Below, one piece after another: positions 12,191 through 21,606 of a DNA stretch of 64,000 bases. The stretch comes from Trichosphaerium sp. ATCC 40318 (Eukaryota > Protista > Tubulinea): the NCBI GenBank assembly GCA_038496445.1, contig JALMLS010000416.1:1-64000 (forward strand), in the 5' to 3' direction. The translations under genes and the position numbers were made by a program. The notes below the pieces were generated by a model, which was not told where the DNA came from, did not search any database, and was given only the letters and a program-made list of their open reading frames with translations. Within the stretch, counting starts at the first letter, position 1. Every line of letters starts with the position of its first letter.

Positions 12191-14757
12191 TCATTTTTTG
12201 TTGATCAAAATATTTCCAATCGTCTGCAAATGTCTTGCGCATTTAAGTGCCGTCTGGAAGTCATCAGTGGCTGCAAACCAGTTGCGCACTTCATCCAAGC
12301 ATCCAACCATGTAATGGCACATAGTTATAGAGAGATTCTTAAATCTCTCCAGCTTATTAGCGGAATGAGATGACGGCTTTGTTGGTTCTGGTAACGTCAT
12401 AAACTCTTGAAATTTGTCAAACTCCTGAATGCAACTGTTAGCTAACAGGTTCATATGTCTTTTCTTTTCAATACCAATTTAAGACGCTTGATTACAGCGA
12501 GAACAGGTTTAACCTCTGGAGGCAGTCGTATTCCTCCAATCTTGTGATAAAATGCTACAAATCGCGGTCGAATAACTGAAATCAAAGGCAATAATTTCGC
12601 TAAAAAGAAAGAAATGAACACCCAAACCAAACAAAACTAAAATGATACCCTTCAATTTATCAAGCTTTTCGCCACTTGGACCACGGTTAACATTATTACT
12701 TGTAACTTGTGTGATACGTGGAAGCACACTGCTTCGTCTAAAGAAAAGATATAAATACAGAGCTATCAAGCAGGAGAAGGGAAAAAGTAGCACTTTTTGA
12801 AGAAGCAAAAAAAACTAGGGTCTTACCGTTGCCCACCAGCCTTTTCAAGAAGGTCCATAGACAAACGTGTTTCAGCTTTAATCTTAGGCATGAACACATT
12901 AGAGAAGACGCGCTGAGAGCATCGTTTTTTTAAGAAAGGATGCTGCAACATTTGTGCGGCTGTAGGGCGACGTCTTGGATCTTTGGCACAACAACAGTTC
13001 TGAAAGTGATCAAACTCTCTACTCCATTTGTGTGGCTCCTTCATTGGTGGTATACCTAGCAACACATCAGTACAACATACCCAAAAACACTTCTTTTAAT
13101 AAACTGTGATTGCAACGTTGTATGTATAGTGTAACGCACCTTGGTAAGCTATCATGCGCATTGCTTCCATTACTGCTAAATCAGCATATGGAGGTTCTCC
13201 TTTTTCTTTGAAACAGTGTCAGATTTGATAACAATCACATAAACATATTACTTACCAGCCATCTCCCTTGATGTAATACCAATGGACCAAATATCCACCT
13301 TATTATTATAACCCTCGCTAGTCAACAACTCTGGTGCCATCCTTCAAAACAGTGTTAAGAAAAGGAGAATTTGAAGAAAAGAAAAAAGAAACAATAAAAC
13401 AAAACGCGTCGCACCAGCAAGGTGTACCAACAATTGTTGTACGTTGCTCATATTTAGCAGTCAAACTTGCTGCAAGGCCAAAATCAGCTAGAACACTTGT
13501 CAGCAACCAACATGGAACATAAGAAGCTTATTTAGTTCCGAAACTAGCGGCAAAAAATGGCAAAAATTAGGCCATTTTCAGACAATCGGAATGTTATCAA
13601 AAAACAGTACTACGCCGTAAAACTGCGCATAGCGCAGTACTAAAAGTAAAAAACTAAGGAAAATAGAAAACAGTAGCGTACTTAATTTTACAGCGCCATC
13701 TTGTTTTAAAAGTACGTTGTCGCTCTTGATATCTCTATGAGTGTATTAGAAATCGATTTTCGAGGATGTTCAAATAGAGGTAATACAGAAATAAAAAAAA
13801 GATTCACAAATGTAAAAAAAAGCTTTTGTTTGCCTGTGAATTTGGTCTCTGGAATGGAGATACTTTATGCCAGATAACATTTCATGTGCAACATATGCTA
13901 TCTGAGGCTCTGTTAATATGAGTCCATCTAATAGATAGTCCGCTAAGCAACCCTATCGAAGAAAGTGTCAAAATACGACAAAAACTTTAATAAAAGAAGT
14001 TTACCTTGTCCATAAACTCCATAATGATCCATAATAGAGTATCACTACCCATGAAGCAGTCGTGGAAGTTTACTATATTCTTGTGGTTTGTAGATTGCAT
14101 GATTTCTAGTGCGATCAGTAAGTCACAGAGCCAAAGAAAGAAAGAGACAAAAAACCAATTTGCCTTTCTGGTTTAAAAAAAACGCGCAAATGCGCTCTAT
14201 AAAGCGTCAAAATAGACATGTGTCTTACTGATTTCGGTTGTGATGTATCGTAAGTCTTCATCTTGTATTTTAACTTTTTTTATGGCGATTACTTTTTTAT
14301 TTTCCTTTCTAGTTGCTCTGTACACCAAACCAGAAGACCTGAAATACCCATAAGCGCTTGAAAAGAACATGCCTTTAAAAAAGAAAATATTTGATGCAAA
14401 TATAAAAAGAAATTCCGTCCGCCTAGGGGTGGTGTTTCTGCGATTCCTTATAAGATTCGCGCAACATGAAGTGAATAAGCGAACAGCAAATCTGTTTTGA
14501 CAAAAAAGGCCTTTAAACGGTTTCTAGTCGCAACAAAACGACTAGCACGCAAGCCTGACAAGTCAAAAGATGGTACAAGTATTACCCTTCACCAAGCTTT
14601 TCGTGCACTATGTAGCCAAGTTCGTGTAAATTACCGCCAGCAGCTCTGTCTTTACCCTACGCGAATGGTAAGCGACAGAAAATACGTACTAGCTCTATTT
14701 CAGTACCAAAAGGTGAGCGAGCTCTTTTTGAGCGCGGGGACTGTGAGTGTTTGCCAT
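12191..14757 (-). CDS. STE20/PAK-like Ser/Thr kinase with C-terminal extension
   Basis: Spliced motifs: KLGEG|SSGLVY..IAIKK, IHR|DIKSDNVLL, DFG..RTTIVGTPCW|MAPE, KVDIWSIG, GEPPY, RRPTAAQMLQHPFL. Confidence 0.88.
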
Positions 14758-15044: not shown

Positions 15045-18000
15045 TTACTCATCATCAGACGACTCATCGTCTTCTTCGTCGGAAGAACTATCATCCTCCT
15101 CTTCAGATTCTTCAGCTACAATAGCGTCTGTGGACGATTCTTCGTCTTGTTTAGCCTTGCGCTTAGTTTTCAATTCAAAAACTTCGTCATTTTCTACTTC
15201 TCGTAGTTCGAGCTCGTCTTTTTCTGCCTCTGCTTCACGTGCTTTAGCACGTTTTAGTTTGCGAGCAGCCTTAGTGCTCATAGATTCATCTTCGTCATCA
15301 CTTGTATCTTCAGATTCGTCATCGCTTGGATAGTCTTCACGATCATCCTCGTCAAAAGGAAGACCCATGTAGAAGAATATCTCATCTGGTGAATACTCAC
15401 CACTTTAGTAAAAATGTTAGCATTAGGCAACCAAACAAACAAAAAACCAGTACGCACAAGTTCTCCTCAACAAATTCTTCACGGTAGAAGTACTCCCTGG
15501 CTTTGTGCTCATCAATTTCATTGAGCTCTAAGATAATTTCTGCTGGTGTCATTGGCACACCTCTACTCTTCTTCATAACTTTCAAAACACCAGTATTACG
15601 CTTTTGGAAAGCTAGTGATTTCAATAGATCAGCTGAAGTTTCTTCTTGACCAGAGTATGCGTCAGTTACCACAGCTAGCAATGGTGTTAGTCTACTTGTC
15701 CAAAACATTTCAAACAACTGTACCGATAAATATGTTAGTTAGTACAGATACTACAACGATGAAGTATACTGCTAGATACCACAGGAGTAGTCCCTTGCTA
15801 TTAACAGCACGAGAGAATCCTTCAAGATCAAATAATCCAATCCAGAACAAAAACATTTGCTCTATACTTCCTGTAAAGTTTCCAAACTCATTCAAATTTG
15901 AACCGAACAAAAGATGACCAAGGCCTGTAAAGACCATGAATAGCATGAGTGAGAAGACAAGCAAATATGTCATAACACCACCCAACTATTTTGTTAAGAG
16001 TTAGTTCATCAACACATTTGTAATGGATGAGTACCTTTGCAATAAGATATCTGAACCAGTAGTACCTTGGGCTACTTCCAAGCAAGTACATAGTCCTAGT
16101 GGTGATTAGATAATGCTGCGTAGTTGCAAAGAAAAGATACAAACGGTGAAGAACTCTTGGTACCTCAAAAATAGCACCATAGCCAATATGACGCTAATAG
16201 AAAAGTATGCAATGTAAATTATGTTGATGGATACTATCTCTCTTAGTACTTCATTGAACTGAAAGATTGAGCCATTTTCGAATGAAGGGAATACAAAACG
16301 ACGTGATACTACTACTAAACGTCCCCATAGGGCAACAGCAACTATGACCATCTAACATATCGTGAGATAAAAAACGATAGTCAAATGGTACGCACTGGAA
16401 TTGTGAGGTACACGAAGAAAGCCATGAAAAAGCCATATCCGCGAACAGAGTGATCTCTAGTAGACAAAAAGGATTTATATGCGCCTTGTCCACGAGCGCC
16501 TGTTCTAAGACCAGCCAAACGGCAAACTTTTTCGCCGATACGCACGTGCTACAAGTTGATGAGCATTAATCAACGAAAAATGGATTACCTTGGCCTCAAG
16601 GAAGACGCACACGAAAATCAATACAATCACTATAATCTAAAGAATCCAATAAGAACGGTAATCCTTTCTTTACTCAAAAGTAAACGTACTTCCAACATAA
16701 TGCGTGTTAAGTCTGCAGTGCTGCCATATGGATCAATGTACAGAGAAATTACACTATCTTCATTCTGTACTGTTCCAAGGAGAGTAAATCGAATAGTCTA
16801 AACCTTGTTTAGACGTTTTGTAAAAGTGAAGGGATACTTACAACGAAAGTTAAGGTGACTGCTTCAAGACTAGGGTTATACAGTGGAAACATTACAACTA
16901 CTGTTCCAGTTTGATCATTTATCCAGTTGGCATTCTATGCAGCGTATAAGAAGTATGAACAATACAATCAATACAAATGTACCTTTGCTTCGTTTATAAG
17001 GTCTGTAGCTACACTAAGACCACTTGTGCGGCGTAGGAAAATGTGTTCAGTCACATTATTAAAAGTACCATTTATTGTCTCAGGAATATTGAAGTTGATG
17101 TTGTCCAAAGCGTGGCGGACAGACCTGATGCCAGTCTCCCTCTTAAAGCAAACTCTTTGGGTTGTATCGTTTGATTCACGAAAGGCTCTAGGACCACACG
17201 TTCTGAGAAAAATGTCAGTCAAACCGCAATGTGTACAAAAGAAATTGTACTCAGTTTTTCGTCTGATATTTGCAACTAGAATGCCAGACCAAAGACGATT
17301 ATAGCGTGCAAGGAAATGTTGACGATCTAGAGGTAAAGGCGATCCAGCAGCGTCCTCTTCTACAAAGATATTGCCCAAAAGAACTTCTTCAAGCCACTAC
17401 AAAAGAAAAATTGTAAAAAGAGAATTGTGCAACACAGATTTCCGTTTAGTCCAAAAAACGTACTGTGTAGAGTTGTTCCTAGGCTTGTATTAGCGATGCT
17501 AAACTGGCAACAAGAAAGACTTGCTGAAAGTTGTGTTCAGTTTGTAAAAAAAAAGGCAAGGCCAGAAAAACGATTTTAGAGCTCTACGGGCGCGTAGGAC
17601 TACATTTGAGGCATTTTTCGTTTGGGAAAACTTTTCAGCGATAAAAAGCGTACGTAGTTGCCTATGTCGTCAAAGGTTATAATGCCATCAAAGTTGTCCC
17701 TGTTGAGAATCAAATTAGGAAAAGTGATTATTCGTGTTAGAAACAAGCCACAAAGTACCTCAGTTCTCCAGTTATCGCGATAGGGGTCTTTATAGAGTAC
17801 GGAATTAATTGTAGGCCCAAGAGTACAAAAACTAATCCTGTTGTGGCTAACAACAAGTAATACAAGAAGCTGAACCTAAAGGAAGTTCATCAGTCTTCGT
17901 TTAAGATTAAATAACCATACGTTTTCTCCTCATCGAGTACTTCGAGTACGGATCGGACCAAGCGAAGCTTTGGCGCTTGTGCAGCTACATCGTTATCATG

Positions 18001-18654: not shown

Positions 18655-20159
18655 ATGGACGCAAGTGCTCTAACAAAATTAGCTAAACGCGCAATAGAAG
18701 CCAAAGCAAATGCTTACTGCCCTTATTCGAGGTTTCAAGTAGGTGCTGCAGTACTAACAGATACAGGAGATGTATTCGTCGGTACAACTTCTAAAAAAAC
18801 GCCTCGACCTCTAATACGGCTAGGTTGTAACGTGGAGAACGCTTCTTATGGTCTAACAATCTGCGCTGAACGAGTTGCAATTTGCAGCGCTATAGCCAAT
18901 GGAGCCAAGAAAATAGTCGCCTTGGCTTGTTCCACGTACGTTTTTTTTTGTAGATTGTTGATTAGCATCATTTCTCACCTTACTGAAAGAAATATCGATG
19001 ACGACAAGTTCCCATGCGGCGCATGCCGTCAATTCATCGCTGAGGTACATTATACTTTTTTGTCACAAACTAGAAAACGACTAGTTCTTTATTTGACACA
19101 TGTAAGTTCGGGGACGTTCTCGTTCTTGCAGTGCGTCCAAGTGGTGCATTCAAACGCATGAGTATTCGCCAACTATTGCCATTTCCATTCGGAAAAGACG
19201 CTCTACACCAAGATGAGTATGCCAACCTTCCTATGGACCCAAAAGCCACATTTTCGCCTCGATCAGAGCGCACAGGGCCTGCAGATGGTGCTGCTGTAGA
19301 AGATGAGTACGTTCATTTCCATAACATGGAAACTGTTCAGTTTTTTTCAGTGTTACTAATAGCCAATAGCAAGGACGCAGTAACGCGTAGTCTCATGATT
19401 ATTGGAGATAGCAGAGTAGGTACATAAGACAATCAGTAAAGTACAACAATATTGGGCTCACTGGTGTTTTAAAAAAAAGGAAAGACATCCATCATTTCAC
19501 AGTTTAGAGATGACAAATTCTCAGCAGTTTACAACGGAACAAACACTATAGATTTTGTACTACATAATGGGTGATATCACCATTTGGTTGCTTACGTTTT
19601 TATCAATGTAGGCAAGCCGTATAAAGGCATATAAGCGCAATAAAATTACAACTGTAAATGGAGTCAAAAACAAAGTTCAGATTTGGGATACAGCAGGATC
19701 AGAAATGTTCACAGCAATCACGCGATCGTATCTTAGAGGATCTAAAGGAGTACTCATTGTTTTCGACGTAACAGAACCAACATCATTCCAAAATGTACCA
19801 TCATGGTTGGAGGAAGTTCAAAAGCAAGGTCCCAACAAACCGCGGATACTTTTAGTTGGTGAGTTCGTTTTCGGCTTTGTCAATGGCATCAATTTGTTAA
19901 ATCCTATTAGGTAATAAATGTGACATAAAAGGACGTAAAATCACTAGCGAGATGGCATTGGTACGCACTAGGTAATGGCTTATCAGGGTTTTTTATTCCA
20001 TTTTAGAAATATGCAAAACAAGCTGGTTTGTTGTATATCGAAACATCAGCAAGAACAGCACGCAATGGTACGCAGTTTCTACTTTAGTCACGTGTTTGAC
20101 ATCTGTTATTAGTGCATCAAGCATTCATCAAGTTGTTGACAGCAATCGCTGCCGAATAA
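18655..20159 (+). CDS. Cytidine deaminase (homotetrameric CDA type) fused to a Rab-like small GTPase
   Basis: CDA motifs: AYCPYSRFQVGAA, G|CNVENASYGLTICAER, PCGACRQ, LLPFPFG. The same reading frame continues to IIGDSRVG|KTS, then WDTAGSE, YLRG, G|NKCD and ETSA. Stop is at 20157-20159. Confidence 0.85.
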
Positions 20160-20381
20160 GTATGTGACGGTACTGAATGAAATGAAGTTACACGCTGGTT
20201 CTCTTGATCATACTTTTTCTCCACAACTGGATGTGTAAAACTAATCAAGATGCATTATGTAAAAAAATATTGACAGTGAAAAAAACCAGCGTATGAATTG
20301 TTTTGACTTGAATTTGCTCGCTTTGTTGGTATTGAATAATAGTCTGCTGTAAGCGATACCGTGAGGCGTGCGTATTCTCAA

Positions 20382-21236
20382 ATGCTGGCGACAAGAGGCA
20401 TAAGCATTGTACAGCGTAGTAGCATCGCAAGGATAAACCGCTCTAAACCTACCCGAGCGTTTACTACTAGTGTTAAAACCCAATCAACCAAACCAAAAAA
20501 ATTAACTTGGGGAGAGAACCTCTGTACGCTGCCCTAAGCTCTTATTACGCACCATCGCGTTATTGAGCTCAATAATCACGTAATAGCTTACAACTACATA
20601 GTGCCCGACTTAGAAACCAATGCGCTTGGCGGTAAGCATTTCGTATTCCTAGGCGATTTTAGATTGCAAATCGGTGACGAGAGGCCAGTATACAAATCTC
20701 AAAAATTTTTGCGAGGATTAGTAGAGCGTCATGGTGGTAGGGTTCAAAACAAACTGTCTAAACGCGTGCGTACAAAACCTCTAACTGTCAAAAAAAAACA
20801 AAAACAAAAACTTGCTCGCTCCCTGTTACAACTAAACTAATGGTGCAGGTAACGCATGTCATCACTTCACGAACATATGTTGAACACACTGAGGACGGTC
20901 GCCGCTGTAAAGTACGTGGGCTTGAAGAATTCTTTCTGTAAAGACAAAAATATTCTTTTTTTTTTTGGAAATGATAGAAACCGTCTTTTAACTGAAGCTG
21001 TATCTAGATAATACAGGCATTGATAGATAGAAAAAAACCAGCACATTCCATAGACTTGATTCTGGACTCTATCCGTAATGAAGAGTTTGTTGAAGACGAC
21101 GAAAAGTATAAAATATTTTGTCCTGTTGCTGGTACCATAATATTATTCATTATTTAAGTTTGCTCTACTTCTACTCATTCTCTCTATTACAGAAATGCCA
21201 AGACAACAGAAGTTGTTTGCCCACAAGGCCATTTAA
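20382..21236 (+). CDS. Small single-BRCT-domain protein with predicted mitochondrial presequence
   Basis: N-terminus MLATRGISIVQRSSIARINRSKPTRAFTTSV is R/S/T-rich with no acidic residues. BRCT region: LGGKHFVFLG...LVERHGGRVQNKLSKR|VTHVI...LILDSI. Confidence 0.65.
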
Positions 21237-21606
21237 GCAAAAGAAAACAAAACAAGAAAAATGTAAAGACACAAAATTGATAAATGCTCAAACAACGGCG
21301 CCACAAAAGGATTTTCTGGCAAGCGCACATTTTTTGATAATAAACAAAAAACCAATCTTAAATGTGCCAAAACTTACGTATTATACACATTTGCGCGTAA
21401 ATTGAATAAACGACTTGCTATGTAATTACAAACACGCCCCTTTACTGTTCTATACAGATGCAAAACTATCTTCAAACATGAGTTTGACACATGTTGTTGT
21501 CTAAAACAAAACAAAAGAAAAAATCGGATTGTCGTTGTCCGAGCATTTTAAGTCCACAAACACCTTTTTAAACACACCAACTCACCTTACAACACCTAAT
21601 ACACTC

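Follow-up and report, generated by a model that had tools for sequence, protein, structure and literature searches.

A candidate cytidine deaminase-Rab-like GTPase fusion gene in the amoeba Trichosphaerium sp. ATCC 40318

Cytidine deaminases (CDAs) with a three-Cys zinc site are homotetramers. The human (1mq0), mouse (1zab) and B. subtilis (1jtk) enzymes and the family models TIGR01354 and NF004064 share this site, a catalytic Glu, the motifs NVENASY and LLPxxFG and a core of ~127 amino acids (aa). Rab-type G domains, for their part, are known within bigger polypeptides. The large Rabs (Rab44, Rab45 and Rab46) combine an EF-hand and a coiled coil with a prenylated C-terminal Rab domain, and RJL (DNAJC27) has a J domain; the partners in these proteins are signalling or chaperone modules, and no deaminase is known among them. 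A third relevant protein is Rab24, a stand-alone Rab that keeps its C-terminal Cys and has Ser67 at the position of the switch II Gln. Its low intrinsic GTPase activity and inefficient prenylation are described in a passage of PMC11886508 that cites Erdman et al. 2000.

The DNA analyzed here (the window) consists of positions 1 to 64,000 of contig JALMLS010000416.1 from Trichosphaerium sp. ATCC 40318. On its + strand, positions 18655-20159 can be read as nine exons that form a single 362-aa frame, with the junctions placed by motif, and the predicted product is made up of a complete tetramer-type CDA, a linker of ~65 aa and a Rab-like G domain. Compared with the tetrameric CDAs listed above, the amoeba protein would have ~215-235 extra C-terminal residues, namely the linker and the G domain. 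As in the large Rabs, the G domain would be the C-terminal part of a bigger polypeptide; however, the protein falls outside the Rab44/45/46 class, as its N-terminal part is a CDA and it does not have the prenylation Cys that the large Rabs keep. It resembles Rab24 in having WDTAGSE instead of WDTAGQE, but among solved structures its exon 6 is nearest to Rab35, Rab1 and Sec4. We lean towards the view that the locus produces one polypeptide of 341 or 362 aa, in which the CDA is followed by the linker and the Rab-like G domain, and that this product is most likely the 341-aa form. The likelihoods that we attach in words to this reading and to its competitors (two separate products, an artefact or a gene remnant) are judgements and not computed probabilities.

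Gene model and deaminase half

The exons and the other features of the gene are listed in Table 1. The eight introns of the CDA-Rab gene are all of the GT..AG type and 42-62 nt long, and seven of them have a GTAC donor. The GC content of the window (~0.37) and the intron sizes are consistent with the published Trichosphaerium draft genome (PMC10521059), where GC is 37.7%, introns average 75 nt in length and genes have ~8 introns each. Splice donors in the window are mostly GTAC(G/A) and not GTAAG or GTGAG. Counted on both strands, GTAC and GTACG are each 1.5-fold and GTACGTT is 4-fold above expectation, and GTAAG, GTGAG and GTATG display no enrichment. This GTAC preference helps gene modelling in this genome.

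Table 1. Positions of the exons and other features of the CDA-Rab gene in the window
Feature	Position	Strand	Basis
Exon 1, ATG and CDA N-terminus (…CPYSRFQVGAAVLTDTGDVFVG)	18655..18781	+	Alignment with other CDA N-termini
Exon 2, CNVENASY substrate-binding motif and CAE (zinc Cys, catalytic Glu)	18824..18935	+	CDA alignment
Exon 3, PCGACRQFIAE (second and third zinc Cys)	18990..19044	+	CDA alignment
Exon 4, CDA C-terminus (FGDVLVLAV…LLPFPFG), linker, Rab strand 1 and half of P-loop (LMIIGDSRVG)	19107..19419	+	In frame, stop-free
Candidate extra intron inside exon 4, donor GTACGTT	19307..19369	+	Donor score, heptamer enrichment, composition
In-frame ATG, possible start of a stand-alone Rab-like protein (METVQFFSVLLIANSKDAVTRSLMIIGDS…)	19326..19328	+	Would be used if the locus made two products
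Exon 5, rest of P-loop (G/KTS) and switch I (YNGTNTIDF)	19480..19556	+	Motifs in spliced model
Exon 6, strand 3, G3/switch II WDTAGSE, RabF-like motifs	19612..19858	+	Pfam Ras, structure matches, RNA contig
Intron 6	19859..19910	+	Confirmed by RNA
Exon 7, G4 NKCD	19911..19960	+	Motif; RNA contig 43 nt into exon
Exon 8, G5 ETSA	20007..20067	+	Motif
Exon 9, helix 5 (VHQAFIKLLTAIAAE) and stop TAA; without hypervariable tail or Cys	20113..20159	+	Spliced model

Introns 1 (18782-18823) and 2 (18936-18989) are both in frame and stop-free, and a naive ORF of 168 aa (18655-19161) crosses the two of them. Removal of intron 1 (GTAC..AG) takes out a 14-aa insert that is absent from other CDAs. The database CDAs P0127 and P0061 have inserts at the intron 1 position, which may likewise be introns left in by their gene models.

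For intron 5, two other acceptors in the same frame lie 15 and 24 nt past 19611 (19612-19635). Use of either would reduce an 8-aa insert, ASRIKAYK, in the hairpin between strands 2 and 3 of the Rab domain; the second acceptor would drop all eight residues and give the exact spacing between switch I and strand 3 of Rab1 and Rab35. We retained 19611 as the acceptor because it is the first AG past a CTTAC branch-like motif.

The sequence-only reading of this DNA had described the deaminase as intact, with CAE and PCGAC, and this is confirmed by the exons in Table 1 and by the family searches, for which the queries were the genomic ORF 18655-19158 (its two in-frame introns read through) and exon 6 alone. 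The former matches Pfam dCMP_cyt_deam_1 (PF00383) at 6.8e-14, with 52 bits versus a cutoff of 25, and the NCBIfam cytidine deaminase model NF004064 with 100.9 bits, above the cutoff of 74. Its TIGR01354 score of 96.7 bits is below the cutoff of 113.65, for a query that had two translated introns and did not include the C-terminal exon. The motifs CPYSRFQVGAA, GCNVENASY, CAE, PCGAC and LLPFPFG are all present. When the first 200 residues of the spliced protein are aligned locally with eight CDAs, the catalytic motifs (CPYS.F.VGAA, GCNVENASY, CAE, PCGACRQ and LLPxxF) are all in register. The zinc site (CAERVA and PCGACRQ) is of the three-Cys type, matches the other CDAs column for column with the catalytic Glu present, and does not have the His and two Cys of the dimeric class. 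The best solved-structure relatives are B. anthracis 2d30, mouse 1zab, human 1mq0 and B. subtilis 1jtk (best E 3e-17). Judged from these motifs, we predict that the deaminase half is catalytically complete and that it belongs to the three-Cys, homotetrameric class. In the eight-CDA alignment the stand-alone CDAs stop 5-10 residues past the FG motif, whereas the CDA-Rab protein continues.

The Rab-like half and its transcript

The G domain has a P-loop that is split by intron 4 between GDSRVG and KT, the switch I Thr (YNGTNTIDF), DTAG, NKCD and ETSA. Searched on its own, exon 6 gives a Pfam Ras match at 1.9e-20 (73.5 bits), and its best solved-structure matches are Rab35, Rab1, Sec4 and Rab2, with ~55% identity to Rab35. 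The motifs and family scores of the two halves are well outside what chance would give. Compared by eye, the RabF motifs are kept in part (KVQIW, IVFDVT, YLRGS and MFTAIT). With G1, G4 and G5 intact, the domain is predicted to bind guanine nucleotide, and its specificity for guanine is predicted because both NKCD and ETSA are intact.

In switch II, Ser stands where the catalytic Gln of DTAGQE is expected, and because Rab24 has the same change, intrinsic GTP hydrolysis is probably poor. TBC-type GAPs bring their own Gln finger, so that the Ser need not abolish GAP-stimulated hydrolysis. WDTAGSE is also present in P0269, a partial Rab-like protein from another organism (L007:2283-2708, a Logan contig) that is 52% identical to exon 6; this observation indicates that Ser replaces Gln in at least one further Rab-like lineage that is not Rab24.

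The protein ends with …LLTAIAAE immediately past helix 5. Its TAA (20157-20159) is followed by a GT, but this GT cannot splice the TAA out. As the C-terminal Cys is absent, prenylation is impossible, and for the same reason we refer to the domain as Rab-like and not as a canonical Rab. The G1, G3, NKCD and ETSA boxes, the DTAGSE and the AIAAE end without Cys had all been read from the unspliced letters, and each of them is found in the spliced model; the parallel drawn at the same time with the poorly hydrolysing Rab24 agrees with the passage of PMC11886508 cited above.

A single public run of the organism (X1) has contigs that match the locus, and we regard it as RNA because its contigs show five exact GT..AG joints. 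A 220-nt contig covers 19681-19857 at 100% identity, skips the 52-nt intron 6 and reaches 43 nt into exon 7; the joint is from 19857 to 19910/19911, with GT..AG ends. Therefore, the Rab half is transcribed and is spliced as modelled at intron 6. Coverage within the gene is 19681-19953, and there are no X1 contigs over the deaminase half or the join (18655-19680). This gap is uninformative on the join because most of the other Rab exons are also uncovered. RNA across 19200-19750, which had been named as the place to look for a fused transcript, is thus found in part: a contig spliced at intron 6 begins at 19681, and none lies over 19200-19680.

Presumably the Rab half is translated, since it is intact over six exons and expressed. 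One could still propose that the deaminase transcript carries it in its 3' part as a remnant that is untranslated or decaying, as an orthologue was not found in the searches described below, the prenylation motif is absent and switch II is divergent with its Ser. However, the six exons are in one frame, G1, G2, G4 and G5 are all preserved and spaced as in Rabs, exon 6 retains its likeness to Rab35 and splicing of the transcript occurs where it was predicted. We find a remnant hardly credible.

The join in exon 4

Exon 4 encodes the CDA C-terminus together with the initial half of the P-loop, and the CDA and the Rab are in the same frame with no stop between them. The ORF at 19131-19427 is indeed uninterrupted and has both LLPFPFG and GDSRVG inside it, as the sequence-only reading had reported. 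From this it had been concluded that the fusion holds whatever the splice model, and that conclusion has to be withdrawn: there is a candidate donor at 19307 within the ORF with two possible acceptors, one of which (19350) would break the fusion and the other (19369) would keep it. The fusion therefore does depend on the splice model.

The donor at 19307 is GTACGTT, a heptamer that intron 2 also uses as its donor. There are 15 and 13 copies of it on the two strands of the window versus 3.7 expected per strand, and an enrichment of ~4-fold means that most copies are probably genuine donors. With a matrix from 12 introns it scores 8.3 bits, the top of the 54 GTs in the exons; the matrix is crude because a clear decoy in the CDA core reaches 8.1 bits. 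The composition also changes at this point. The stretch 19307-19369 is intron-like, with a GC content of 0.33 and a T content of 0.38 versus 0.50 and 0.19 for 19107-19306, and GC returns to 0.46 in 19370-19419. If translated, 19307-19369 would read YVHFHNMETVQFFSVLLIANS, which is a hydrophobic patch, and the linker on either side of it is acidic, rich in Pro, Ala and Ser, and looks disordered. The most likely transcript also loses the 63-nt intron 19307-19369 from the linker. Another donor, GTATGCC at 19217, was considered and rejected; GTATG is not enriched in the window, where GTAC donors dominate.

With the acceptor at 19369 the frame is preserved and the product is the 341-aa fusion (…GAAVEDDKDAVTRSLMIIGDSRVGKT…). 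A CTAAT branch-like motif is located 10 nt before the TAG of this acceptor, as is also the case in intron 1 and in one intron of the neighbouring gene. With the acceptor at 19350 (tttttttcag) the intron is 44 nt, the frame shifts and a stop is reached at codon 171, which would leave only a 170-aa deaminase ending in …AAVEDDVTNSQ. No canonical yTnAy branch motif was seen in range of 19350, and the RNA-confirmed intron 6 lacks one too. In the 12-intron matrix the 19350 acceptor scores 5.5 bits (rank 2 of the 76 AGs in the exons) versus -2.1 bits for 19369, and this counts against the fusion. The matrices were also tried as an arbiter between the two acceptors and left the choice undecided, as true acceptors in the 12 introns span -6.6 to 6.6 bits.

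These features allow another reading, namely that the locus makes two products. The 44-nt intron 19307-19350 would give the 170-aa CDA with a tail of ~40 aa, and the Rab would be translated from its own transcript, which would begin inside exon 4 and use the in-frame ATG at 19326 (METVQFFSVLLIANSKDAV…). The hydrophobic N-terminus of such a Rab may take the place of the missing prenyl anchor. In a variant of this reading the gene has alternative acceptors that switch between free CDA and fusion; that is, alternating use of 19350 and 19369 might toggle free enzyme versus fusion. The ranks of the GTACGTT donor and of the 19350 acceptor, the enrichment of the heptamer in the window and the frameshifted stop after 19350 fit with two products, as do the good context of the ATG at 19326 (A at -3), which counts against the fusion, and the fact that stand-alone CDAs finish soon past the FG motif. 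X1 contigs within the gene are also confined to the Rab half, but the RNA is too thin to compare the halves, most of the Rab exons being uncovered.

Several other observations do not fit well with two products. The start codon of the Rab would be inside the last intron of the deaminase, and as a stand-alone Rab would start within the CDA gene, two genes on the same strand would overlap; in contrast, the next downstream gene starts ~210 nt past the CDA-Rab stop. The common stop-free frame would be a coincidence, for which a rough estimate for two independent genes is about 1 in 5 (~0.2). In addition, the 19350 acceptor is the one with no canonical yTnAy in range, although this point is softened by intron 6, and CDA-only or Rab-only fragments of the gene are absent from the protein collection searched. 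We regard two products as possible but rather unlikely.

The fusion has additional support. Both halves match their families, the CDA can be aligned over its whole length with stand-alone CDAs, and the GTAC donor style recurs in the RNA-confirmed introns of the neighbouring gene. C-terminal extensions are also natural in this class of CDAs, for example in the CDA-CoaE fusion P0139. Conservation gives the fusion no support, because no orthologue or protein of the same architecture was found in the searches.

Two ordinary neighbouring genes could also look like one if the assembly had a chimeric join or if an indel masked the stop codon of the deaminase. The draft genome was built with long-read data (PMC10521059), and there is an out-of-frame TGA at 19214, seven codons past the FG motif. 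However, 19107-19340 is free of homopolymers of ≥5 nt, the sites at which indel errors are to be expected, the join is free of repeats and N runs, the intron style is common to both halves, and a misjoin would also need to land in frame. The specific case of a stop hidden by a frameshift error was rejected as unlikely, because the TGA at 19214 is the only nearby out-of-frame stop and has no homopolymer close by. The only long homopolymer of exon 4, T7 at 19341, is inside the candidate intron. An artefact of the assembly or the sequence is thus very improbable.

Distribution, possible function and neighbouring genes

A HMMER scan of the CDA ORF against 1.84 billion representatives gave 790 matches at E ≤ 1e-10. 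No CDA-GTPase fusion was found among the best 150 of these 790, and none of the 150 is from the source organism. Ten of the best 150, including most of those near or above 300 aa, were scanned for domains and have no GTPase domain; they are tandem CDAs, single CDAs with an unassigned extension, and CDA-CoaE, YbeY-CDA and deacetylase-CDA proteins. These natural fusions indicate that the CDA fold accepts both N- and C-terminal partners, but they differ from the amoeba protein in that the partner is not a GTPase; among the partners, YbeY and CoaE are genes typical of prokaryotes.

A word-indexed protein search found nothing above 50% identity to the CDA ORF within 92-294 aa and 0 matches to exon 4; exon 6 had one match, the 52% identical P0269, which is unrelated. 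The length windows of this search would hide a full-length fusion, and the representative scan would not. No called neighbour gene of a deaminase family is present on the Logan contigs L007 and L008 associated with P0269, and the metagenome loci L001-L006 have Rab genes at ~50% with no CDA upstream. Neighbours in the ESM Atlas belong to plain CDA or plain Ras-family clusters, with no fusion among them. The viral contigs searched contain no relatives, and so a giant-virus origin is unsupported. The literature search returned nothing relevant on a deaminase-GTPase fusion, and cytidine deaminase is not mentioned in the supplements of the Trichosphaerium genome paper (PMC10521059). As had been suspected from the sequence, the pairing of a CDA with a Rab-like domain is found nowhere else in the databases and literature searched, which comprise thinly sampled protist proteomes and, for the CDAs, the best 150 of 790 matches; the domains themselves are known.

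If the fusion is made, the deaminase core would tetramerize and four G domains would be displayed on flexible linkers. Two functions can be envisioned. The one that we favour, with low confidence, is that the G domains form a multivalent handle through which the deaminase is brought to a Rab effector or GEF. Recruitment would be to an endocytic or phagosomal membrane and would occur by avidity, without a lipid anchor; in a phagotroph, such a membrane could be the place where nucleosides from digested prey appear. The other is that the G domains are sensors of the GTP/GDP state that modulate the enzyme. GTP is known to activate CTP synthase, which is a precedent for control by GTP status. Either regulation by GTP state or effector-mediated targeting of a tetrameric deaminase would be compatible with the architecture. 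Our confidence is evenly divided on whether the locus gives a genuine, translated fusion of this sort, which would be a tetrameric salvage enzyme with four lipid-free, slowly hydrolysing G domains, in which the guanine-nucleotide state or a Rab effector or GEF would control the site or the rate of cytidine deamination.

If true, this would connect pyrimidine salvage with guanine-nucleotide or membrane-traffic signalling in a new way, and it would also be a natural example of a Rab domain that works without a lipid anchor inside an oligomeric enzyme. Should no fusion be produced, the locus is still an instructive example of an ORF that spans two genes and hides an intron, and it would call for caution with other Rab-fusion calls in this genome.

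Neither half has a second copy in the window, which also contains no tRNA or Rfam matches. The downstream gene (20369-21385, +) has a higher contig depth in X1 than the CDA-Rab gene, and the 5' end of its transcript is probably near 20369 because a contig begins there with adaptor sequence. One of its exons reads …GGKHFVFLGDF…LVERHGGRV…, and Pfam gave no match on 20601-20837. Its four RNA-confirmed introns are at 20524-20601, 20766-20848, 20912-21007 and 21132-21192; three of the four donors are of the GTAC type (GTACGC, GTACGT and GTACCA) and the other is GTGCGT. Upstream, on the opposite strand, 15400-17400 (-) has a weak polycystin-channel-like chain of ORFs (PF08016, E 0.0099, below the cutoff), and 12823-13065 (-) encodes the C-terminal part of a protein kinase, with a PF00069 match of 2e-5 in one exon.
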